A stretch of 63,790 nucleotides of DNA, the filler included, from Lenisia limosa (lineage: Eukaryota; Protista; Breviatea), in assembly GCA_001655205.1 (NCBI GenBank). It is 12 parts of 12 records of this genome, joined end to end, with 100 filler letters (N's around TTAATTAATTAA, not from the genome) between each part and the next. Parts side by side here need not be neighbours in the genome. Positions count along the whole stretch, not along the records: positions 7,349 to 14,747 come from LPNZ01009235.1; 11 more parts are not named here. The stretch is one strand, 5' to 3'. Every line of letters starts with the position of its first letter. Positions within the stretch are counted from its first letter, which is position 1. The position numbers and the translations under genes were made by a program. The notes under the pieces were generated by a model, which worked only from the letters and a program-made list of their open reading frames with translations, searched no databases and had not been told where the DNA came from. Below, one piece after another: positions 7,249-14,747 of this stretch.

Positions 7249-7348
7249 NNNNNNNNNNNNNNNNNNNNNNNNNNNNNNNNNNNNNNNNNNNNTTAATTAA
7301 TTAANNNNNNNNNNNNNNNNNNNNNNNNNNNNNNNNNNNNNNNNNNNN
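7249..7348. other. Artificial scaffold-concatenation linker (44N-TTAATTAATTAA-44N), left boundary of the bacterial scaffold
   Basis: Exact 100-nt structure with stops in all six frames, repeated 11 times in the window (others start at 14748, 17588, 20056, 22259, 48874, 52147, 55460, 56777, 58407, 60701). Confidence 0.97.
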
Positions 7349-7479
7349 GCTATAATCCATTGCTTGCTTTTGGCTAATTACACGATTTATTCCTACATTT
7401 AGCAACCTATGATTCCTACTCGAAAATCCTGCGGATTTTACTCGCAACGGAATCATAGCCAAACCGTTGGCAAACATTA
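7349..7479 (+). repeat. attC-like element 1 (left end truncated by scaffold edge)
   Basis: Left arm GCTATAATCCATTGC pairs with right arm GCAACGGAATCATAGC. Ends AAACC-GTTGGCAAACATTA (GTT at 7466). Confidence 0.8.
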
Positions 7480-7481
7480 GA

Positions 7482-7991
7482 ATGAACGACGACAGAAGAA
7501 AGAAAATCGAGTTATTAAAAAGAAAAAATAAAGTCAAAAACGATGTGAAATTTTTGACTGAATTCTATGCGGATATAGAAATCGTTGAATTTCTGACAAA
7601 TGACGAATTGAATAAAATGTTTGCATTCGACAAAAAGGAAGATGTTAGAAATTATAATCTTGAATTTTCTTACTCGCCATCTGAAAACGAAACTGTGAAA
7701 TCAGACTTATCCGACTTGATTGAAGACAGTTTTTTGTTCAAACCTTATGATTTAAGCGACCAAACTTATTGCTTAACCCATAAAACAGAATTCAATAAAA
7801 TCTTTGAGAGAACATTTATAGAAAATAACATTCCGACTTTGATTTACACTAGCGATGGAGAAATATCAATTGTGGTTTCTAAAGAGGTTGTCGATTACGA
7901 ATTAAAAGACGGAATTAAAACTCAAAAAGAATGGTGGAATATAATTGTAGGAGGAATAAAAGGAATAAAACAAATCATAAATAAAAAATAA
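7482..7991 (+). CDS. Hypothetical protein, 169 aa, cassette cargo
   Basis: ATG at 7482, 16 nt after the GTT. Stop TAA (7989-7991) lies inside the end box TAACGTTTGCCAAC. No recognisable domain. Confidence 0.8.
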   Translation: MNDDRRKKIELLKRKNKVKNDVKFLTEFYADIEIVEFLTNDELNKMFAFDKKEDVRNYNLEFSYSPSENETVKSDLSDLIEDSFLFKPYDLSDQTYCLTHKTEFNKIFERTFIENNIPTLIYTSDGEISIVVSKEVVDYELKDGIKTQKEWWNIIVGGIKGIKQIINKK

Positions 7992-8050
7992 CGTTTGCCA
8001 ACACCGGCTATAGTTCATTGCTTCTGACTTTCCTCTCGGAAAGTCCTCGC
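7989..8050 (+). repeat. attC-like element 2 (right half lost in N gap)
   Basis: TAACGTTTGCCAAC-ACC-GGCTATAGTTCATTGC followed by sub-hairpin GACTTTCC-TCTC-GGAAAGTC. Confidence 0.75.
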
Positions 8051-8090
8051 NNNNNNNNNNNNNNNNNNNNNNNNNNNNNNNNNNNNNNNN

Positions 8091-8828
8091 GCTTTAACAA
8101 TATACTTTTTCCTATTAACTAACTTCTGCTTCTCTCAGATAAAGAAAAAGGATTTGAACGGAATTTGGAAAACCAATACGGAGTTGTTTTCAAAAGCGGA
8201 CACAATTAAATTTTATTCAAATATTAAAGATTGTTACCAAACAAAATGGACAATAGAAAAGAGAAAATTTAAAACTAACGATTTAAATATTTGTACAGAA
8301 CCACCAAGATTAAGTGGAATTGTTGGTAAGGAGAAAATTAAGTTGAGAAAAACAGATTTCGGGCAAGTAATTGAACATTATCAAAACGGAATTCTTGCTG
8401 ACAAATTCAGAATCGTCGAATTAAAAGAACAAAATTCACAGGAACTGAAATTAATGCGTTTTGACAAGTTATCTGAACAAAAGGTTTATAAATATGTGGA
8501 CTCTTTAGTTTTCAAAGTTCTGAACTACAATCCAGATAGTACAACGAACAATTATGGAGTAAAAATTTCGGAATCTAATCAGAATGTGAAAATAAAAATA
8601 CGAGATGGTGGAATTGGAAATCTAGAACCACTTGTTGTAGTGAATGGACGACCATTACAAAATAGAGAACCATTGAAAGAACTATTGCTTGTGGAAACTT
8701 ATGCTATTAAATATCTGACTAAAGAACAATCAGCAAGTATTTACGGTTCGAGAGCAATAAATGGAGTTATTTTACTATTGACATCTGAAAAAAGATTTAA
8801 AAAAATATGGAAAAAATACGGCAGGTAA
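8091..8828 (+). CDS. Secreted protein with C-terminal TonB-dependent-receptor (SusC-type) plug-like domain, 5' end in gap
   Basis: The frame is open from 8091 (ALTIYFFLLTNFCFSQ, signal-peptide-like). C-terminus EPLVVVNGRP...SASIYGSRAINGVILLLT matches the SusC plug motif. No beta-barrel follows. Confidence 0.75.
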   Translation, partial: ALTIYFFLLTNFCFSQIKKKDLNGIWKTNTELFSKADTIKFYSNIKDCYQTKWTIEKRKFKTNDLNICTEPPRLSGIVGKEKIKLRKTDFGQVIEHYQNGILADKFRIVELKEQNSQELKLMRFDKLSEQKVYKYVDSLVFKVLNYNPDSTTNNYGVKISESNQNVKIKIRDGGIGNLEPLVVVNGRPLQNREPLKELLLVETYAIKYLTKEQSASIYGSRAINGVILLLTSEKRFKKIWKKYGR

Positions 8829-8886
8829 CAATGTATAACCGCAATTACGGCGGATTCGACTACGTCCGAATCCACTCGGAATTGCT
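8816..8886 (+). repeat. attC-like element 3 (right half lost in gap)
   Basis: ATACGGCAGGTAAC-AAT-GTATAACCGCAATTACGG. The internal sequence is nearly identical to element 5. Confidence 0.75.
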
Positions 8887-9010
8887 NNNNNNNNNNNNNN
8901 NNNNNNNNNNNNNNNNNNNNNNNNNNNNNNNNNNNNNNNNNNNNNNNNNNNNNNNNNNNNNNNNNNNNNNNNNNNNNNNNNNNNNNNNNNNNNNNNNTAA
9001 AAAAACTAAC

Positions 9011-9247
9011 GTGGAACAACTAACAGAAGAAGAAAAGTTAAAGAAATTTGAACCTTTCGTAAATAGATATAAAGAAATGATGCTACTTGCGTTTAAGGAA
9101 GGTTATAAAGGAGAAAAAGGAATTTTAGAGTATTACTTAACTGTGATAAAAATGGCAGAATACTTAAAAGAAAATTATGACCCTAAAGACCCTTCAAAAA
9201 CTCTTGGTATAATCCCTCGAATTCATTATACCTTTGAGAAAGCATAA
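9011..9247 (+). CDS. Small hypothetical protein, about 78 aa (start uncertain, may begin in gap)
   Basis: GTG at 9011, reading MEQLTEEEKLKKFEPF. Overlaps the opposite-strand ORF by 65 nt. Confidence 0.45.
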   Translation: MEQLTEEEKLKKFEPFVNRYKEMMLLAFKEGYKGEKGILEYYLTVIKMAEYLKENYDPKDPSKTLGIIPRIHYTFEKA

Positions 9248-9506
9248 GGTTAAGAATACTGTTAAAAGCAGTTGTTTTATGATAGTATTCTTGACCATCT
9301 ATAAATACCGACTCTCTGATTGGGAAATTTTTATGGATGTATTTGTGTAGGGAATTTTTGTTAGCGGATATTTCAAACTCAATGTCTGACTTATTAAAAT
9401 TAGACTTATCAAGATTTCTAAGGAACTTTTTAAATAAACTGACCTTTGAACTTATTAAATTATCAAAATTTGTTTTTTCTTGTTCTAATGTAATAGTATC
9501 TGACAT
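9183..9506 (-). CDS. Hypothetical protein, 107 aa, antisense to the array
   Basis: ATG at 9506 (MSDTITLEQEK). The ORF-track extension to 9623 runs into element 4 and is probably not real. Confidence 0.45.
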   Translation of the reverse strand: MSDTITLEQEKTNFDNLISSKVSLFKKFLRNLDKSNFNKSDIEFEISANKNSLHKYIHKNFPIRESVFIDGQEYYHKTTAFNSILNLMLSQRYNEFEGLYQEFLKGL

Positions 9507-9539
9507 AATTAAAAATTTTCTGACTAAATTAACAAAAAA

Positions 9540-9684
9540 ATACTGTGTACAACACAGTATATAAAAAATAACTAGGCAAGTGCCGAGCCTAGAATTTCGG
9601 CAAATAAAAAACACAACGGACATACGAAAATTTAGCGTTTATTTACACGTTACTTTTCATATACAAAACCGTTATGTGCAAGCT
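9540..9684 (+). repeat. attC-like element 4 (complete, AAC 9551 to GTT 9673 = 123 bp)
   Basis: Arms GTATATAAAAAATAAC and GTTACTTTTCATATAC. Boxes ATACTGTGTACAAC and GTTATGTGCAAGCT. Confidence 0.85.
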
Positions 9685-9710
9685 GAAAAAACAGCTCGTA
9701 ATAGAATATA

Positions 9711-10226
9711 ATGACCGAACAAGCAATAATAAAACAGATTGGAAAACCAGCGGAAATTGACTTTCGAAAACCGAAAGCAATCGGAAGTGCTGGATTTTAT
9801 CTTAAGTCATTTAAAGCTAAAAACCCTGAATCTGAAAATTTGAAACTGGATTCAAAATGCAACTTTGAAAAGCGGACAAACGGAATTTTATTACGTGCGA
9901 ATTATTCGAATAAGCTGACCGCAATACCAATCCCAAAAGAAAGTATAATCGGAATTACAATCACGAGAGGAAAAGAAACGATTGCCCCATTTTTTTTATC
10001 GCCAATGTGGATTTTATTAAAACTCGGAGTTTCGAAATTATACGCTCGATATTTTAAAATTTTAATCAGCGAATATTCGATTGACCAAATGGAATTGAAT
10101 TTAAAAACGGCTGAATATGAAATGGACTTTATAGCAAACGGATATCTATTCGAAAGACAAAAAAGTTTCTTTGAAAATCTGAATTACAAAAACAAATTAA
10201 AAACAATAATAAAAGCCAGCACATAA
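9711..10226 (+). CDS. Hypothetical protein, 171 aa, cassette cargo
   Basis: Clean ATG-TAA ORF whose stop overlaps the AAC of the end box AGCCAGCACATAAC. One moderately hydrophobic segment. Confidence 0.8.
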   Translation: MTEQAIIKQIGKPAEIDFRKPKAIGSAGFYLKSFKAKNPESENLKLDSKCNFEKRTNGILLRANYSNKLTAIPIPKESIIGITITRGKETIAPFFLSPMWILLKLGVSKLYARYFKILISEYSIDQMELNLKTAEYEMDFIANGYLFERQKSFFENLNYKNKLKTIIKAST

Positions 10227-10320
10227 CAATGTATAACCGCAATTACGGCGGATTCGACTACGTTCGAATCCACTCGGAATTGCGAGCGTCAGTGCTTACT
10301 CGAATATTAACGCATAAAAC
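10214..10320 (+). repeat. attC-like element 5 (right end lost in gap)
   Basis: AAC-AAT-GTATAACCGCAATTACGGCGGATTCGACTACG, matching element 3 over about 59 nt with one mismatch. Confidence 0.8.
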
Positions 10321-10330
10321 NNNNNNNNNN

Positions 10331-11065
10331 ATTACATTAGGATTACTTTGTTTATTTTCAAATCTGATTTTTAGTCAGATTACTTTAGAACATTCTTACA
10401 CTGGAAACTCTCAACTTTTATATTCTGGTTATAAATTTTCGTTCAATACTGAAAACGATATTTATTTCTATACTTATGACAGCAGTTCAAACTCAATTGA
10501 TATTTACAATAGCAGTCATACCTTATATAAAACGGTTTCATTACCATTTACAAATACTGCATATTTAAGTATCTTTTTTCCGACTGACAAACTTTTCAAC
10601 AATGACAACTTGATTGAATTCATAGCAATGGCGTATTCAAATAGCGGAACTTCAAGTATGCAATTAATTAACGAAGATGGTACAGTTTTATATGATTTTG
10701 GAGATAAAAACAGAGCTGACTTAAATAAAACGAATTCTTCAGAATATAAACTTATAACTTCCAAAAGTGACGGAGTTAATATAGATGTTTACGGTTTAAC
10801 TGGAACATTATCTGTAATTCAAGAAACGCAATTTTCTTTAAAAAACATTTATCCAAATCCAGCAAACGAATCAATTAATATTCCTAACTCTTTAGGCAAA
10901 AACAAATCGGCAGATTTAAAAATATATAGTATTAATGGACAAGAAATAATTTCAAAGAAAATAAGCACCAACAATGAATATATATCAATTGACATTTCTA
11001 ATTTGTCATCTGGTGTATATATTTATGAATTAAATGGAGTTTCCGAAAGATTTATAAAAAAATAA
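10331..11065 (+). CDS. T9SS type A sorting-domain-containing secreted protein (5' end in gap)
   Basis: Signal-peptide tail ITLGLLCLFSNLIFSQ. C-terminal IYPNPANESINI...KIYSINGQ...IDISNLSSGVYIYEL...RFIKK is the Bacteroidota Por/T9SS CTD motif. Confidence 0.85.
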   Translation: MTLGLLCLFSNLIFSQITLEHSYTGNSQLLYSGYKFSFNTENDIYFYTYDSSSNSIDIYNSSHTLYKTVSLPFTNTAYLSIFFPTDKLFNNDNLIEFIAMAYSNSGTSSMQLINEDGTVLYDFGDKNRADLNKTNSSEYKLITSKSDGVNIDVYGLTGTLSVIQETQFSLKNIYPNPANESINIPNSLGKNKSADLKIYSINGQEIISKKISTNNEYISIDISNLSSGVYIYELNGVSERFIKK

Positions 11066-11067
11066 AA

Positions 11068-11213
11068 AAACTGTTGCCAACAATGTATAAAAATAATTGC
11101 GGTTTAGTGCTAAAACAAAGGTAGTTGCGTGTTTGCTACATCTGATTTTCCTGCGGAAAATCCTCGCACGCAAACCCGCAACTATTCTTATACTAGACCG
11201 TTGTACCACATTA
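11068..11213 (+). repeat. attC-like element 6 (complete, AAC 11079 to GTT 11202 = 124 bp)
   Basis: Arms GTATAAAAATAATTGCGG and CCGCAACTATTCTTATAC. Boxes AAACTGTTGCCAAC and GTTGTACCACATTA. Confidence 0.85.
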
Positions 11214-11752
11214 TGAAAAAAATTTCCGCAATAATAATTTTAATTCTAACATTGATTTCTTGCAAAGAGAAAACTAATGAAAATCCAAGCGAAAAAAATA
11301 TGACAAATGAATTTATCTCTCGAATACATACACCTGAGCTTGAGACTGACTTTTATAGAATTTTAGGAACGACTTCTTTAGAAAAACATACTGCTGACTT
11401 TCAAAAAATAAATTGGAAAAAAGACTTTTGGAGCGAATATGAATCGGGGAATTTTAATATGACCAACCTAGAAGCGTTTAACAGAACTGACTCTAAATAT
11501 TTATCAATTGGAACAGCACCGAATACGGACGATACTTTTCAATTTGTTGTCGGACTTGGAACTCATAAAGAAACTAACGACAAAAACAATCCAATCAGAA
11601 AGATAAAACTTTATTTTACCGAAACAGAAAATTCAGAAGTCCCAGAAAAATTAATTGAACTATTTTTTAAAGGAGATTATTCTAAAATAAACTCGGAATT
11701 AAATAAATACGAAATGGACGAAATTGAGGATTTGTATTTGAACATAAAATAA
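11213..11752 (+). CDS. Lipoprotein of unknown function, 179 aa
   Basis: MKKISAIIILILTLISC is a type II signal with lipobox, followed by KEKT. ATG is 13 nt after the GTT and the stop is inside the end box TAACGTGGTACAAC. Confidence 0.85.
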   Translation: MKKISAIIILILTLISCKEKTNENPSEKNMTNEFISRIHTPELETDFYRILGTTSLEKHTADFQKINWKKDFWSEYESGNFNMTNLEAFNRTDSKYLSIGTAPNTDDTFQFVVGLGTHKETNDKNNPIRKIKLYFTETENSEVPEKLIELFFKGDYSKINSELNKYEMDEIEDLYLNIK

Positions 11753-11894
11753 CGTGGTACAACACCGTGTATAGCTTATTGCGGCTGAAGTGCTTAAACA
11801 AAAGTTAGTATTTTTTTGCTAACTTTACGCTTATCCGAATAACCTCGGATTTTAACCCGCAACAAGCCATACACAAACACGTTAGGCAAAATTA
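11750..11894 (+). repeat. attC-like element 7 (complete, AAC 11761 to GTT 11883 = 123 bp)
   Basis: Arms GTGTATAGCTTATTGCGG and CCGCAACAAGCCATACAC. Confidence 0.85.
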
Positions 11895-11915
11895 AAACGA
11901 AACGCATCAGAAACT

Positions 11916-12425
11916 ATGGAAATAGAAATGGATAAGTGCCATTATTGCGAAAATTATACATCAGACGAAAAGAGTTACTACGAACATACGATGTATGAAA
12001 TTCTCAATACATCTCTAATTCAAGGAATGAGTTATAGATACCGAGAAAAGAAAATCAAAATTCCAAGATGCACTACTTGTTACAACAAACATAATAATCA
12101 ATCTTTGTATATAACATTGCCTCTTTGGATAATTTCCGCACTTGGAATTCTATACTTTTTCACTTACAAAATTAACGACGGAGAATTTAGCTTCGTTTCT
12201 TTAATTCCAGCAATTTTATTAGGCGGAATTCCAGGCGTTATCGTGAATTTCATTCTTGACAGCTTAAAAATAACTCATAAACTTTTTGGAGTAAAACCCG
12301 AAAATGACATAAAAGAAAATTTAGAAGTAAAAAGGCTAATGGAATTGGGATGGAAATTAAACAAACCTTCCAATACCGAAGTTACAAAAGACGATATATC
12401 AAAAACAAGTCCTTACAAGAAATGA
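11916..12425 (+). CDS. Two-transmembrane protein with two CxxC motifs, 169 aa
   Basis: CHYC and CTTC precede hydrophobic helices LYITLPLWIISALGILYFFTY and FVSLIPAILLGGIPGVIVNFIL. Confidence 0.8.
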   Translation: MEIEMDKCHYCENYTSDEKSYYEHTMYEILNTSLIQGMSYRYREKKIKIPRCTTCYNKHNNQSLYITLPLWIISALGILYFFTYKINDGEFSFVSLIPAILLGGIPGVIVNFILDSLKITHKLFGVKPENDIKENLEVKRLMELGWKLNKPSNTEVTKDDISKTSPYKK

Positions 12426-12667
12426 AACAATATGACATAGTTTATTATCCGAATTGCCCAGAAACACTTTATAAGGTTGTTGCAACGAAAGACGAATATT
12501 TAGTGAGCTTTGGACCTTATAACAAAACTATTTCACCGAAAGATGGATTTGATTGTGTAATAATGAGAGTTCGAGACACTGAACTTAAAAACGGAGAAAT
12601 CTATTTTAATTCGACTGGAGAAATTATTAACGAAAACACGTCTGAATTGAGAAAATTGGAAAAATAA
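12422..12667 (+). CDS. Small hypothetical protein, 81 aa, translationally coupled to the upstream gene
   Basis: ATGA start/stop overlap at 12422-12425 (MKQYDIVYYP). Stop is inside the end box TAACTTTGCCTAAC. Confidence 0.7.
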   Translation: MKQYDIVYYPNCPETLYKVVATKDEYLVSFGPYNKTISPKDGFDCVIMRVRDTELKNGEIYFNSTGEIINENTSELRKLEK

Positions 12668-12812
12668 CTTTGCCTAACAACGTGTAAGCGCAATAACGGC
12701 TGAATTTCCTAATCGGAAATTCAACTCGTTTTGCTAAATTAAGTGCGTCAGCGGAAAGTACTCGCGCACTTTCCCGTTACTGACGCTTACACAAAACCGT
12801 TGTGTGTAAGCT
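12665..12812 (+). repeat. attC-like element 8 (complete, AAC 12676 to GTT 12801 = 126 bp)
   Basis: Arms GTGTAAGCGCAATAACGG and CCGTTACTGACGCTTACAC, with one extra base in the right arm. Confidence 0.85.
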
Positions 12813-12837
12813 GACAAAAAATCCGTGAAATAGAAAA

Positions 12838-13428
12838 ATGGGAATATTTAACTTTATAAAAGGGAACGAAAAGGGAAAATCGGAAAAAACCGAAAAGCCA
12901 TCACCTGAACATAAGTTATTCTCTGAAAAAGCTATGGAAATCGTAATTCCGACTTTTGAACAGTTCGGATTCCAAAAACACCGAATTGAAATCGGAAATC
13001 ATTTCTCAAACATAACTTACCGAAAAAACGAACAGTATCTAAAAATATCAAGTACAACTCATCCAAAAGATTATCCTCACTACTATTCGATTTCATTCGG
13101 AGAAGGAAATAGTGAAGATTTTTTTGAATTTGACTGGAATTCAATTAATCTTTGGGATTTTCAGAAAAAAATAAATCCTAATAGAAAATTATCAAATTAT
13201 GATTTTCCTTTAAAAAGTGAATTAGAGTCAAGTTTGGAAAATGCAAAAAAGGACTTACTTGAATTTGGAGCTTCATTTCTAAACGGAGAATTGAGTATCT
13301 TTTATCAAATTAGAAAAGAGCGAAACCAAGAAAAAGAACCATATAAAATTCGCAAGTTGAATAAAGATGGTAAATATGAAACAACTTACGAACCTAAAAG
13401 TTTAGAATTGAAAAAGAAATACAGTTGA
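12838..13428 (+). CDS. Hypothetical protein, 196 aa, cassette cargo
   Basis: Clean ORF flanked by GTTGTGTGTAAGCT and AGCCTACACACAAC. Confidence 0.8.
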   Translation: MGIFNFIKGNEKGKSEKTEKPSPEHKLFSEKAMEIVIPTFEQFGFQKHRIEIGNHFSNITYRKNEQYLKISSTTHPKDYPHYYSISFGEGNSEDFFEFDWNSINLWDFQKKINPNRKLSNYDFPLKSELESSLENAKKDLLEFGASFLNGELSIFYQIRKERNQEKEPYKIRKLNKDGKYETTYEPKSLELKKKYS

Positions 13429-13436
13429 ATGAAAAA

Positions 13437-13582
13437 AGCCTACACACAACAATGTGTATAATTCATTGCTAGTAAAGGCTTCCTTACGAAAATCCTCGCG
13501 GATTTTCTATTCGGTTTGTATTTGCTAAATTAGTTGCTTACACACGCAACGAAATCATACACTAGACCGTTGGCAACAAGCT
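13437..13582 (+). repeat. attC-like element 9 (complete, AAC 13448 to GTT 13571 = 124 bp)
   Basis: Arms GTGTATAATTCATTGC and GCAACGAAATCATACAC. Internal hairpin GAAAATCC-TCGC-GGATTTTC. Confidence 0.85.
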
Positions 13583-13608
13583 AAAGAAACATCCGAACAT
13601 ATAATTAA

Positions 13609-14730
13609 ATGAGTGGAAAAAACATACATTCTGAACCCTTTGATAGTGGAACAATAACAAAACTTGAAATATTTGAGGATTATGCCCAAGCTTGGATACC
13701 AACTTTTGTAATGCAAGCTCATTTTGGCGAGATACACATATTTGACTTTTTTTCTGGTCCAGGCTACGATTCAAATAATATAGCTGGTAGTCCAATTCGG
13801 ATTTTAACTAAAATAAATGAACAATTAGGCAACATTTTGAGGACTAAAACTAAAATTGTTTTGCACTTCAACGAATTTGAACCTAATAGAAAAACACAGA
13901 AAAAGTTTGAACTACTCAAAAAGAATTGTGAAGATTTTATTTTACAAAATCCTAAATTCAAATACTTTCTTTCTGTAAACTATTACAATGAAGATGCTGA
14001 AGAATTGTTCTTCAAATTAATTCCAACAATCAAAGAATACCCTTCATTAGTTTATTTAGACCAAAATGGAGTGAAATTTATTTCCCAAGAATATGTTGAT
14101 GAACTGGAAAGACTAAATACGACTGATTTTATCTATTTTGTCTCATCTTCCTTTTTTAGAAGATATGGAATGACAGAAGAGTTTAAAAAAGCGTTAGAGA
14201 TTGATATTGAAGAATTGGAAAATGAGGAATATCGCAATATGCATCGTTTGGTTTTCAATAAAATAAATTCAAGGCTTCCAGAAAATTCAGAATTAAAATT
14301 ATTTCCGTTTTCAATAAAAAAAACGAGAAATATTTACGGAATTATATTTGGCGCAAAGAATTACGCAGCGGTCGATAAATTTTTAAAAATAGCTTGGAAA
14401 AGAAACAGCTTAAATGGAGAGGCTGATTTTGACATTGATGAAGATGCAGGTAAAATTCAACTTGATATGTTCGAGGGACAAAAATTAACAAAAGTTGAGA
14501 AATTCAAAAACGAATTAGAAACAAAACTTTTAGAAAGAAATACCGTTACAAATAAAGGAGTTTTGATGTATACATATTCAAATGGTCATATTCCGCAACA
14601 CGCAGTTGACTTATTGAAACTTATGAAAAAACAAGGTAAGTTAGAATACGAAGGTAAATCACCATTCTTAAATTATGAGAATGTATTTAGAAAGAATAAT
14701 ATTGTAACCTACAAAATAATCAAAAAATAA
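13609..14730 (+). CDS. tcmP: Three-Cys-motif partner protein TcmP (SAM-dependent methyltransferase-like, GMT-wHTH type), 373 aa
   Basis: N-terminal TITKLEIFEDYAQAWIPTF, SAM-binding-like IFDFFSGPG, LVYLDQNG and a YGIIFGAKN motif near the C-terminus, followed directly by an ORF starting MAQSS. Confidence 0.8.
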   Translation: MSGKNIHSEPFDSGTITKLEIFEDYAQAWIPTFVMQAHFGEIHIFDFFSGPGYDSNNIAGSPIRILTKINEQLGNILRTKTKIVLHFNEFEPNRKTQKKFELLKKNCEDFILQNPKFKYFLSVNYYNEDAEELFFKLIPTIKEYPSLVYLDQNGVKFISQEYVDELERLNTTDFIYFVSSSFFRRYGMTEEFKKALEIDIEELENEEYRNMHRLVFNKINSRLPENSELKLFPFSIKKTRNIYGIIFGAKNYAAVDKFLKIAWKRNSLNGEADFDIDEDAGKIQLDMFEGQKLTKVEKFKNELETKLLERNTVTNKGVLMYTYSNGHIPQHAVDLLKLMKKQGKLEYEGKSPFLNYENVFRKNNIVTYKIIKK

Positions 14731-14731
14731 A

Positions 14732-14747
14732 ATGGCACAATCAAGTA
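14732..14747 (+). CDS. First five codons (MAQSS) of a probable DUF5131 (Gp37/Gp68, radical-SAM-like) protein, truncated by scaffold end
   Basis: ATG 2 nt after the tcmP stop. DUF5131 is the established neighbour of TcmP and often starts with an S-x-I-E-W-T motif. Only 16 nt are visible. Confidence 0.4.

Follow-up and report, generated by a model that had tools for sequence, protein, structure and literature searches.

The piece of DNA at positions 7349 to 14747 (LPNZ01009235.1) is very probably part of the chromosomal cassette array of an integron-like platform present in Flavobacteriales and other Bacteroidota. It lies in a window of 63,790 nucleotides, the whole stretch of DNA analysed, taken from the Lenisia limosa assembly GCA_001655205.1. 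What the piece holds is a genuine array of mobile, integron-like gene cassettes. The array belongs to a large marine Bacteroidota gene-capture system. This system has so far gone largely unseen because its recombinase, in related genomes, is of a different, Xer-like kind and its hairpin sites were not reported by the published IntegronFinder 2.0 survey.

Nine attC-like elements alternate with nine cargo units, two of which carry two ORFs each. Five elements are complete, spanning 123–126 bp from AAC to GTT (123, 124, 123, 126 and 124 bp). The remaining four are cut, E1 by the left edge of the piece and E2, E3 and E5 by three gaps of N. A preliminary description of this DNA had given the same counts and lengths, all of which we reproduced. 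It had also placed ATGs 13–50 nt after the GTT; start codons are indeed close to the GTT, but the measured range is 10–37 nt. Stop codons overlap the AAC or precede it by 0–20 nt, in line with the description. The features are as follows.

7349..7475, + strand: E1, attC-like element cut on the left by the piece edge; R' box GTTGGCAAAC at 7466-7475; partial covariance-model match 7347-7463
7482..7991, + strand: cassette 1 ORF, 169 aa, no known family; identical protein in 8 contigs
7993..8050, + strand: E2, left part of attC-like element; R'' GTTTGCCAAC at 7993-8002; cut by gap 1
8091..8828, + strand: cassette 2 ORF, 249 aa in contig L001; first 12 nt lost in gap 1; C-terminus of product weakly SusC/plug-like
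8823..8886, + strand: E3, left part of attC-like element; cut by gap 2; family D1
9011..9247, + strand: cassette 3 first ORF, 78 aa, GTG start; gene call in L001
9183..9506, − strand: cassette 3 second ORF, 107 aa; convergent with the first ORF and overlapping it; gene call in L001
9547..9677, + strand: E4, complete attC-like element; AAC 9551 to GTT 9673, 123 nt; covariance model 88 bits
9711..10226, + strand: cassette 4 ORF, 171 aa, no known family
10221..10320, + strand: E5, attC-like element cut by gap 3; join to next cassette provisional
10331..11065, + strand: cassette 5 ORF, 248 aa in L001, without its first 12 nt in the window; T9SS C-terminal sorting domain (PF18962, 1e-14)
11075..11206, + strand: E6, complete attC-like element, 124 nt; AAC-GTT 11079-11202; covariance model 104 bits
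11213..11752, + strand: cassette 6 ORF, 179 aa, lipoprotein-like N-terminus
11757..11887, + strand: E7, complete attC-like element, 123 nt; AAC-GTT 11761-11883; covariance-model match
11884..12801, + strand: cassette 7 mobile unit, including E8 to its GTT; ORFs 11916-12425 and 12422-12667; boundary resolved to within the shared GTT
12672..12805, + strand: E8, complete attC-like element, 126 nt; AAC-GTT 12676-12801; covariance model 107 bits
12838..13428, + strand: cassette 8 ORF, 196 aa, no known family
13444..13575, + strand: E9, complete attC-like element, 124 nt; AAC-GTT 13448-13571; covariance model 107 bits
13609..14747, + strand: cassette 9, TcmP-family gene 13609-14730 (TIGR04474, 1.6e-31) and start of a DUF5131 gene at 14732, truncated by the piece edge

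All three gaps fall within elements, and reading frames should not be read across any of them. Gap 1 (8051-8090, 40 N) and gap 2 (8887-8997, 111 N) are spanned collinearly by the independent contig L001, which is 99–100% identical on both sides and has 105 and 75 nt, respectively, in their place. L001 also supplies complete copies of E2 (125 nt, 10822-10946) and E3 (11714-11838). For gap 3 (10321-10330) no bridging contig or run was found among those searched. Its flanks are 13 kb apart in L001, in opposite order, and in the probable source run the left flank continues into cassette 3. The left parts of E3 and E5 are almost identical.

The end boxes of the elements link each cassette to its own downstream site. 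At the five junctions testable in the window, the GTT and following 7 nt at the start of a cassette agree at 49 of 50 positions (34 of 35 variable positions) with the reverse-complemented box that precedes the cassette's own downstream AAC. For instance, R'' of E2 complements R' of E1 at 10/10 positions. We read this cross-match as the circle-closure signature of integron cassettes. The same chain runs through about 15 junctions in L001 and 9/9 in locus L022.

A comparison of cassette order, proposed in the preliminary description, found the same cassettes in other orders in independent assemblies, with breakpoints at the GTT. All window cassettes recur in L001 at 99–100% identity in a different order, although some order differences could stem from short-read assembly across near-identical sites. 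Across 8 samples, cassette 1 lies behind 7 distinct upstream elements, and all of these converge at C|GTT. At locus L002, the site of the TcmP cassette stays with it, and both neighbours change exactly at the GTT. Contig L106 precisely lacks cassette 7; its junction consists of the left part of E7, the GTT and then post-E8 sequence. Sequence comparison shows the cassettes to be discrete GTT-bounded units that acquire new neighbours and come or go one at a time.

As ssDNA, all five complete elements fold better than shuffled sequences (bottom strand z −2.2 to −5.9), and in none of the five is the top strand more stable than the bottom strand. The cleanest long stem is that of E7 (−24.4 kcal/mol, bottom strand, z −4.6). 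This folding, together with the 49/50 junction match, places the pattern far beyond chance. RNAalifold, applied to 18 elements, returned 22 pairs, 14 of them compensatory. Among 92 elements outside the training set, stem pairing held in 96.3% of cells, compared with 27–48% when partners were slid, and double changes occurred at 16/22 pairs. Two pairs were invariantly G·T (92/92 and 90/90), on the bottom strand only. Sites are about 125 or 190 bp long. On the folded bottom strand, each has an outer R box, with xxxxAAC paired to GTTxxxx, followed by two G·T pairs; an unpaired, asymmetric spacer of about 4 nt on the 5' arm and 1 nt on the 3' arm; and a 16-bp L stem with the invariant G·T beneath a variable top. 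The sites had been described as departing from the RYYYAAC/GTTRRRY consensus. They do, but only slightly because the consensus is itself loose; the real departures are the R–L box geometry and the recombinase.

No recombinase is encoded in the window, as had been stated; one was found, with an attI-like site, in related genomes. The link to the window is made through relatives sharing identical cassettes. Arrays in complete Aequorivita genomes, and in dozens of other Bacteroidota, begin at a conserved attI-like site after a 378-aa Xer/XerA-like tyrosine recombinase gene pointing in the same direction as the cassettes. The linkage is also seen at loci L007 and L022-L024. We surveyed one genome per species, giving 80 loci and 105 covariance-model matches. 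Of these matches, 103 were downstream of the recombinase (p about 6e-55) and 104 were on one strand; the upstream flanks, 629 kb in all, held only 2. Of the 48 loci whose downstream flank reached 600 nt or more, 12 had no element match, most of them with less than 2.3 kb of flank. L094 (a pseudogene) and L096 had none despite 6–10 kb.

The attI-like motif (…CGTATATAC-4 nt-GTT) is 40–110 nt past the recombinase stop codon and was found in 51/65 loci. At 30/32 loci its junction with the R'' of the first cassette matches at 9/10 positions or more. The first cassette is joined to attI at its GTT. The 3' end of the recombinase gene probably contains an outward promoter of Bacteroidota type (TTTG, 20 nt, TAnnTTTG), a motif match to a consensus known from the literature. 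TAnnTTTG is at a constant offset in 46–50 of 67 loci, including those where this falls past the stop codon.

In the recombinase, the catalytic R, K, H, R, H and Y never vary. The stretch that measures 69 aa in V. cholerae IntI4 is only 26 aa long here, and hence the enzyme lacks the IntI insertion. It scores 192 bits with TIGR02249, for which the cutoff is 265, and the closest solved folds are XerA and then IntI4. An extra domain of about 95 aa is found at the N-terminus, and a divergent 118-aa zinc-ribbon gene is the upstream partner in 74 loci. Judged by these features, the enzyme is not a canonical IntI.

This Xer-like enzyme, or host XerC/D, might instead recombine short double-stranded dif-like cores, leaving the hairpin incidental. 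The Xer/XerA-like character of the recombinase, its missing insertion, and an attI-like site resembling a short double-stranded core whose TATA-rich arms are inverted all fit this idea, which we nonetheless consider improbable. A 16-bp stem with 14 covarying pairs, kept over 80–150 nt, and invariant G·T pairs favouring one strand only would have no role in a double-stranded 28-bp core. Furthermore, crossovers occur invariably at the same end, the GTT of R', a feature shared with single-strand attC recombination. The pdif modules of Acinetobacter plasmids depend on XerC/XerD and have 28-bp double-stranded cores in alternating orientation. They too are separate gene units flanked by sites on which Xer-type recombinases act but, unlike the present system, have no long hairpin, attI or one-directional array.

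Less probable still is a conventional integron array whose canonical IntI is encoded elsewhere in the genome, the adjacent Xer-like gene being a bystander. The AAC…GTT layout, the cassette logic and the 123–126 bp lengths are those of classical chromosomal attC sites. Taken alone, the piece also amounts to a CALIN (Cury et al., 2016; Néron et al., 2022), an attC-like run without an integrase. However, a recombinase heads such arrays in related genomes, and the contig ends within 600 nt past the recombinase gene in 32/80 loci; the lack of an integrase in the window is an effect of fragmentation. The first cassette is joined to the conserved site directly past the Xer-like gene (the 30/32 loci above), and arrays travel with this gene across genera whilst the chromosomal neighbourhood varies. 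In addition, the chromosome of Aequorivita sp. H23M31 has the recombinase, attI and at least 9 sites of this kind, yet IntegronFinder 2.0 found no IntI in this genome, for which its Table S1 lists 0 complete integrons, 0 CALIN and 0 In0 (PMC9024848). For this one genome, the table indirectly bears out the earlier suggestion that standard attC models may miss the sites. No description of the system was found in the searchable literature.

Least probable of all are REP/BIME- or MITE-like palindromes, or terminators, merely sitting between genes: the elements are intergenic, imperfect, multicopy palindromes with stable hairpins, but they are almost absent from the upstream flanks, all but one share an orientation, their end boxes are cassette-specific and match across rather than within elements, target-site duplications and T-runs are absent, terminator-like matches number 4 against 2.8 expected, no Rfam family matches, and the conserved wobble pairs are on the antisense strand, so that sense RNA would carry A·C mismatches. 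Neither fixed synteny nor genome-wide REP/ERIC-like scatter, the outcomes set against the earlier reading of a Bacteroidota cassette-capture system with hairpin sites, occurred. Cassettes move with their boxes (cassette 1, TcmP and L106) and matches cluster downstream of one recombinase gene; the reading is supported.

The integron-like platform has much in common with sedentary chromosomal integrons such as the Vibrio cholerae superintegron with its 123–126-bp VCR sites. Shared features are a recombinase, attI and long one-directional array; mostly promoterless cassettes; R''/L''/L'/R' boxes with conserved AAC and GTT; crossover at the GTT, the circle-closure signature and bottom-strand-biased folding. 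Conversely, its recombinase lacks the IntI-specific domain, is below the integron-integrase model cutoff, has the N-terminal domain and conserved zinc-ribbon partner, and is co-oriented with the cassettes. Its hairpin has a 6-nt against 3-nt spacer whose surplus bases are on the 5' (cleaved) arm, with invariant G·T pairs, and conserved extrahelical bases are missing from the 3' arm. The platform also went uncalled in the published IntegronFinder 2.0 run. In inverted-integrase integrons (Treponema denticola, Chlorobi and similar), too, a co-oriented integrase gene lies directly upstream of the cassettes. Their integrases contain the IntI-specific domain, absent here, and the standard attC model recognises their sites. 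Archaeal integrons similarly occur outside the classical taxa and have attI immediately downstream of the integrase gene. However, the IntI-specific domain is retained in archaeal IntIs, and IntegronFinder detected the corresponding attCs (Ghaly et al., 2022, 10.1101/2022.02.06.479319), neither of which holds for the present system.

The relation between recombinase and sites is one of genomic association, from which we infer catalysis. Each cassette consists of one or two genes, mostly without promoters, and the recombination site that follows. The adjacent recombinase would excise cassettes as circles (attC x attC) and integrate these circles at attI. Like integron integrases, it would use the folded bottom strand as its substrate and cut within the AAC on the 5' arm; the wobble pairs and the usual polarity of tyrosine recombinases point to bottom-strand ssDNA. 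In classical attC sites, the IntI insertion grips extrahelical bases. Because this insertion is absent, the recombinase may read other unpaired features, the asymmetric spacer and G·T pairs, perhaps with the help of the extra domain at its N-terminus or of the zinc-ribbon partner.

As in sedentary integrons, the cargo is mostly of unknown function, with toxin–antitoxin pairs and defence genes. The two genes of cassette 9 match PDC-M30 A and B, a candidate pair for phage defence. The TcmP gene matches PDC-M30A at 5e-146; its partner matches PDC-M30B at 2e-133 and PDC-M41B at 1.4e-134. Sites of sedentary integrons are also targeted by IS110-family elements, among them the IS1111-attC group. Here, IS110-family insertions occur in sites at L007 (twice) and L002, always at one fixed position within the site; the inserted elements are parasites of the sites, outside the platform.

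The piece at positions 7349–14747 (LPNZ01009235.1) holds nine attC-like elements, E1–E9, that alternate with nine cargo units, cassettes 1–9. Reading the piece and anchoring the end boxes reproduced the element number and lengths given in the preliminary description. The five complete elements, measured from AAC to GTT, are as follows.

9551–9673: E4, complete element, 123 nt
11079–11202: E6, complete element, 124 nt
11761–11883: E7, complete element, 123 nt
12676–12801: E8, complete element, 126 nt
13448–13571: E9, complete element, 124 nt

Four elements are incomplete: E1, at the left edge, and E2, E3 and E5, at runs of N. The cargo reads left to right throughout, except for one antisense ORF in cassette 3. 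ORFs had been said to start 13–50 nt past the GTT; the closeness to GTT stands and the range becomes 10–37 nt. Stop codons lie 0–20 nt ahead of the next AAC box or overlap it, in line with the earlier description. Cassette 3 has convergent ORFs at 9011–9247 (+) and 9183–9506 (−) that overlap by 65 nt. A family search gave no match for either, and the antisense ORF would need its own promoter beside E4. Many elements carry the motif TTTGCTA near the centre, between two small inner hairpins (for example at 11136–11142, 11817–11823, 12729–12735 and 13522–13528). An Rfam search of the piece at a permissive threshold returned no match. Scans for σ70 promoters and terminators, using models ill-suited to Bacteroidota, detected no enrichment.

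All three gaps in the piece (gap 1, 8051–8090; gap 2, 8887–8997; gap 3, 10321–10330) fall within elements. An independent 13.9-kb metagenome contig, L001, matches every part of the piece at 99–100% identity. L001 runs collinearly across gap 1, where it has 105 nt, and gap 2, where it has 75 nt. Hence, both joins are sound; the gap lengths in the scaffold were misestimated, judging by L001. The ORFs of cassettes 2 and 5 each lack their first 12 nt in the piece. In L001 the sequence left of gap 3 leads to a lipocalin cassette, and a site of a different type lies ahead of the sequence right of gap 3. In sequencing run X15, which contains the whole stretch, 38 nt of a contig connect 10320 with 8998, where cassette 3 begins, so that cassettes 3 and 4 form a cycle (window 8998–10320). 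Among the contigs of four runs, none bridged 10320 to 10331. Read-based joints with sides of 20–31 nt inside similar sites were set aside as products of repeats. Most likely, the source genome has one site type at both E3 and E5, so that the assembler broke there and the scaffolder guessed the join; the order across gap 3 is therefore provisional. The cycle could also be a tandem duplication or a two-cassette circle.

An integron cassette is cut between G and TT of the R′ box. Hence, in integrons, the bases that follow GTT are part of the next cassette, whose own site has an R″ box that pairs with them. In the piece, R′ and the next R″ match as reverse complements at 10/10 positions for E1/E2, 9/10 for E4/E5 and 10/10 for each of E6/E7, E7/E8 and E8/E9. 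This is 49 of 50 positions over the five testable junctions of the piece. The two boxes within a single element have little in common beyond AAC and GTT. The same chain runs along some 15 junctions of L001 and holds at all nine junctions of L022, a locus in Aequorivita sp. H23M31.

Cassettes move together with their flanking boxes and are not fixed in synteny. A comparison of cassette order found the same cassettes in a different order in L001. The cassette 1 protein (169 aa) is identical in eight contigs, behind seven different upstream sites, one of them G+C-rich; the eight sequences converge from the boundary C/GTTGGCAAAC onward. The TcmP/DUF5131 cassette (cassette 9), with its own 190-nt site, recurs at 99.7% identity in contig L002. 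There it has other neighbours on both sides, and divergence begins directly past GTT. Contig L106 lacks exactly cassette 7; its junction consists of the left part of E7, GTT and then the sequence downstream of E8. These breakpoints are resolved to within C-GTT. In L010 (435–645) and L011 (356–566) a 211-nt site of 54% G+C precedes the A+T-rich cassette 1. There are hints in such sequences that cassettes from hosts of differing base composition mix within one array.

The sites have an integron-type layout, each cassette closing with an imperfect palindrome. In the family alignment AAC (R″) and GTT (R′) are invariant, and the inner L boxes read GTRTA and TAYAC. Folded as single-stranded DNA, the complete elements are more stable than shuffled controls, and in none of the five is the top strand more stable than the bottom strand. 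The consensus fold of an 18-element alignment has 22 pairs, 14 of them with compensatory changes. From this alignment we built a covariance model, R1, which found 92 further elements in 32 other loci. When these were aligned to R1 itself, which favours the structure, 96.3% of cells were paired, compared with 27–48% when partners were slid by 1–3 columns. Double changes occurred at 16 of the 22 pairs (414 cells) and none of 500 shuffles reached the observed values. Even so, the comparison with slid partners and the variety of pair types leave little doubt that the predicted hairpin is conserved. Sites fall into two size classes, of about 127–135 nt and 185–198 nt (model span with 4-nt flanks).

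The bottom-strand consensus is 5′-xxxxAAC-GG-(4 nt)-(16-bp stem)…variable top…(stem)-(1 nt)-TT-GTTxxxx-3′. Next to AAC·GTT, G·T is invariant (90/90); the pair beyond it is mostly wobble and less regular. Within the stem, one G·T pair occurs in 92/92 elements and another in 76/92. The top strand and the sense RNA have A·C mismatches at these positions, which argues for selection on the bottom DNA strand, or against top-strand folding. Tyrosine recombinases cleave at the 3′ edge of the binding arm. With the crossover at R′, cleavage would fall in AAC of the bottom strand's 5′ arm, as in integrons; this we infer from established enzymology. The G·T pairs and the crossover position point, indirectly, to the folded single bottom strand as the recombination substrate.

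In classical attC sites (attC-aadA7, VCR) the spacers, of 6 and 5 nt, are about equal in length, and the 3′ (R″-L″) arm carries two extrahelical bases. These bases are reportedly gripped by the IntI-specific helix (MacDonald et al. 2006). Here, by contrast, the spacers are 6 nt against 3 nt, with the surplus on the 5′ arm, and one further base is bulged on the 5′ arm in 10 of the 18 aligned elements. The consensus 3′ arm has no conserved bulge or inserted base. The sites had also been thought to depart from the RYYYAAC consensus. Of eight R″ boxes in the piece, a single one fits it fully, but the consensus is loose in any case, so the departure is minor. Xer/dif modules, whose only conserved site is a double-stranded core of about 28 bp with two arms and a 6–8-bp spacer, also differ. 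The conserved unit here is a hairpin of 120–190 nt with a covarying 16-bp stem.

As stated in the preliminary description, the window has no recombinase gene; we found one in related loci instead. The complete 3.35-Mb chromosome CP084379.1 (locus L007) also carries the 169-aa cassette. A 378-aa tyrosine recombinase is encoded 3 kb upstream, in the same orientation as the cassettes. Since it is 99% identical to the recombinase of the MAG Aequorivita sp. NORP10, CP084379.1 is probably Aequorivita. The recombinase is present in L007, in L022–L024 and in 80 further loci. In the four genomes first examined, the recombinases are 70–92% identical and the chromosomal neighbourhood differs. The constant module is a small gene, the recombinase and a low-G+C array (about 30% G+C versus 37–50% in the flanks).

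A scan of one genome per species identified 168 relatives, and the best 80 loci were used. They come from Aequorivita, Gelidibacter, Galbibacter, Profundicola, Planktosalinus, Psychroflexus, Aquaticitalea and Polaribacter, as well as from Weeksellaceae, Cryomorphaceae, Cytophagales, Spirosomataceae, Bacteroidales MAGs and MAGs labelled Chlorobi. Scanning them with R1 gave 105 matches, tied to the recombinase side. There were 103 in 239 kb downstream of the recombinase versus 2 in 629 kb upstream (binomial p = 6e-55), and 104 of the 105 were on one strand. Repeats of the REP/BIME or MITE kind would be dispersed over the genome in both orientations, independently of any one locus, and the elements in the flanks of these 80 loci are not scattered in a REP- or ERIC-like manner.

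Where at least 600 nt of downstream sequence was available, an R1 match was present in 36 of 48 loci. In 32 of the best 80 loci the contig ends within 600 nt past the recombinase. Hence, arrays are mostly missing from drafts and MAGs or lie on unlinked contigs. Loci that stop in this way include L027, L030, L033, L043, L056, L060, L065 and L075. Some genomes carry two copies of the platform (recombinase, attI-like site and partner gene) at different places: L072/L073, L081/L094, L047/L098 and L043/L058.

An attI-like motif, …CGTATATAC-(4 nt)-GTT, lies 40–110 nt past the recombinase stop codon in 51 of 65 loci. In 32 loci we found both this motif and a first site. The attI GTT and the next 7 nt match the reverse complement of the first site's R″ box at 9/10 positions or better in 30 of these 32. 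Thus, the first cassette is joined to an attI at its GTT, and this junction is the strongest tie of the enzyme to the array.

Within the 3′ end of the recombinase gene, TTTG, 20 nt and TAnnTTTG recur at one fixed offset in 46–50 of 67 loci. This arrangement fits the Bacteroidota promoter consensus. The Leu of the SPLD motif is encoded by TTG in 63 of 67, and the second promoter box is retained even past an early end of the reading frame. These patterns suggest an outward promoter in the recombinase 3′ end, a putative equivalent of Pc.

An isolated Gp49/HTH toxin-antitoxin cassette occurs in Planktosalinus lacus (L023/L061, 2653–3465) and carries an attC-like site of its own. It lies outside the array, 6.5 kb upstream of the recombinase, and is possibly an insertion at a secondary site. 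A pair of the same kind is inside the array of L022 (20267–21079). At the platform edge of L007 (4540–4700), 1.2 kb upstream of the recombinase, there are short tandem repeats of GGAAGTATCTA and GGCATGGAGNC units.

The source databases label the recombinase family 'tyrosine-type recombinase/integrase' or XerD. Matches of the L007 protein are given below.

Matches of the L007 recombinase to NCBIfam models and, by sequence search, to PDB structures
NCBIfam integron integrase (TIGR02249): 192 bits, cutoff 265
NCBIfam archaeal XerA / integron integrase: 192 bits, cutoff 220
NCBIfam XerD: 161 bits, cutoff 329.6
NCBIfam XerC: 155 bits, cutoff 335
PDB XerA 4a8e: 136 bits
PDB XerA 5hxy: 110 bits
PDB V. 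cholerae IntI4 2a3v: 105 bits

A fold search ranked the solved structures as the sequence search did. The IntI-specific domain around patch III is the criterion used by IntegronFinder. The alignment to IntI4 (2a3v) falls into two pieces, between which there are 26 residues compared with 69 in IntI4. Hence, the IntI-specific insertion is absent, and it occurs in 0 of 29 aligned family members. All 29 share the catalytic residues R, K, H, R, H and Y.

The first 95 residues form a conserved β-β-α-β-β-α-β domain with no counterpart in IntI and Xer. The domain has structural neighbours in the N-termini of other recombinases. Against solved structures the domain gave weak matches to MutS domain I and the XPB damage-recognition domain (E 0.02–0.3). 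Against AlphaFold clusters it gave other recombinases' N-termini and SMARCAL1/ZRANB3-type domains (E 1e-3 to 1e-4). From these models, a resemblance to domains that sense distorted DNA (MutS domain I, XPB, SMARCAL1/ZRANB3-type) may be taken as a lead only.

A 118-aa partner gene with a DUF2116-like zinc ribbon lies in divergent orientation about 130 nt upstream of the recombinase in 74 loci, with 54–98% identity in nearly all of them. Recombinase P0157, which is 40% identical, was rejected: it sits among SSB genes and tightly packed genes, with zero site matches. This different context places the family limit somewhere around 42–52% identity. A plasmid search yielded IntI2, 29% identical, as its only canonical integron integrase. 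Plasmids NZ_CP040912.1 (Acinetobacter pittii) and NZ_CP044446.1 (A. indicus) encode recombinases that are 48–50% identical over the catalytic part, which is high for hosts so distant. For a Chryseobacterium plasmid protein, 37% identical, the alignment extends across the N-terminal domain. The recombinase genes of L052, L069, L072, L073, L081, L047 and L094 contain 1–2 stops, or 15 in one case, and may be pseudogenes or long-read errors. L052 is still at the head of an array of at least nine sites.

On the evidence of these sequences the array appears to work like an integron. The preliminary description, of a Bacteroidota cassette-capture system, was right in substance: the feature is real and its working integron-like. 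We do not place it inside the integron family, because it lacks both the IntI-specific domain and the extrahelical bases on the 3′ arm. On balance, we lean towards a second integron lineage, anciently diverged or convergent, that is widespread in Bacteroidota and reaches MAGs labelled Chlorobiota. It would use an Xer/XerA-like recombinase without the IntI domain. Hairpin recognition would depend on the asymmetric spacer and G·T pairs, with assistance from the zinc-ribbon partner and from an N-terminal domain that senses distortion. The arrays would be a large pool of accessory and defence genes that short-read assemblies and MAGs systematically lose and that the standard integron tool overlooks.

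By the prevailing view, IntI and its special domain define integrons, and Bacteroidota have almost none. In the present system, the full set of integron components (mobile cassettes, hairpin sites, an attI, a recombinase and a probable promoter) would operate with another recombinase architecture and hairpin geometry. If so, neither the IntI domain nor the extrahelical bases would be required; they would represent one solution. Integron surveys likely undercount, and, since assemblies break at arrays, marine Flavobacteriales MAGs probably lack much of the flexible gene pool. The recombinase and its site would offer a new structure-specific pair to study and perhaps to use in Bacteroidota engineering.

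For Bacteroidetes, the IntegronFinder 2.0 authors reported one complete integron, in Salinibacter ruber, and, from earlier work, only In0 elements. Their Table S1 (PMC9024848) lists Aequorivita sp. H23M31 (GCF_004022485.1) with 0 complete integrons, 0 CALIN and 0 In0. L022, on the H23M31 chromosome, has the recombinase, attI and at least nine chained sites. A 2024 preprint on chromosomal integrons seemingly counts Bacteroidota among clades earlier found to lack integrons, and a 2021 review lists Bacteroidota among phyla with integrons. A classification of tyrosine recombinases describes the IntI insertion as 'not fully conserved' in an integron-like subgroup and links no arrays to such insertion-less proteins. 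Full-text searches of literature outside subscription journals found no account of such arrays in Flavobacteriia or Bacteroidota. A MITE survey (PMC11602168) has no bearing on them.

Searches of Pfam, NCBIfam and PADLOC assigned no named family to most cargo proteins. Cassette 5 encodes a T9SS sorting domain; T9SS is a hallmark of Bacteroidota. Both genes of cassette 9 match the candidate defence pair PDC-M30 (5e-146 and 2e-133), and the second scores equally with PDC-M41B. Related arrays carry AbiH, GmrSD, glyoxalases, Gp49/HTH toxin-antitoxin pairs and a DnaQ-like exonuclease with a BRCT domain. The cargo thus includes candidate phage-defence genes (PDC-M30, AbiH, GmrSD), toxin-antitoxin pairs and secreted T9SS proteins. 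Such cargo parallels recent findings on Vibrio superintegrons.

Insertions of the IS110 family occur in the sites, between AAC-ACC-GNN and CTATAG, at constant position and orientation. The copies are listed here.

L007 10513–11955: IS110-family copy
L007 15725–17157: IS110-family copy
L002 ~13630 to end: IS110-family copy

In classical integrons, insertion sequences of the IS1111-attC group occupy attC sites. By analogy, the IS110-family elements look like site-specific parasites. The two copies in L007 are 99.4% identical.
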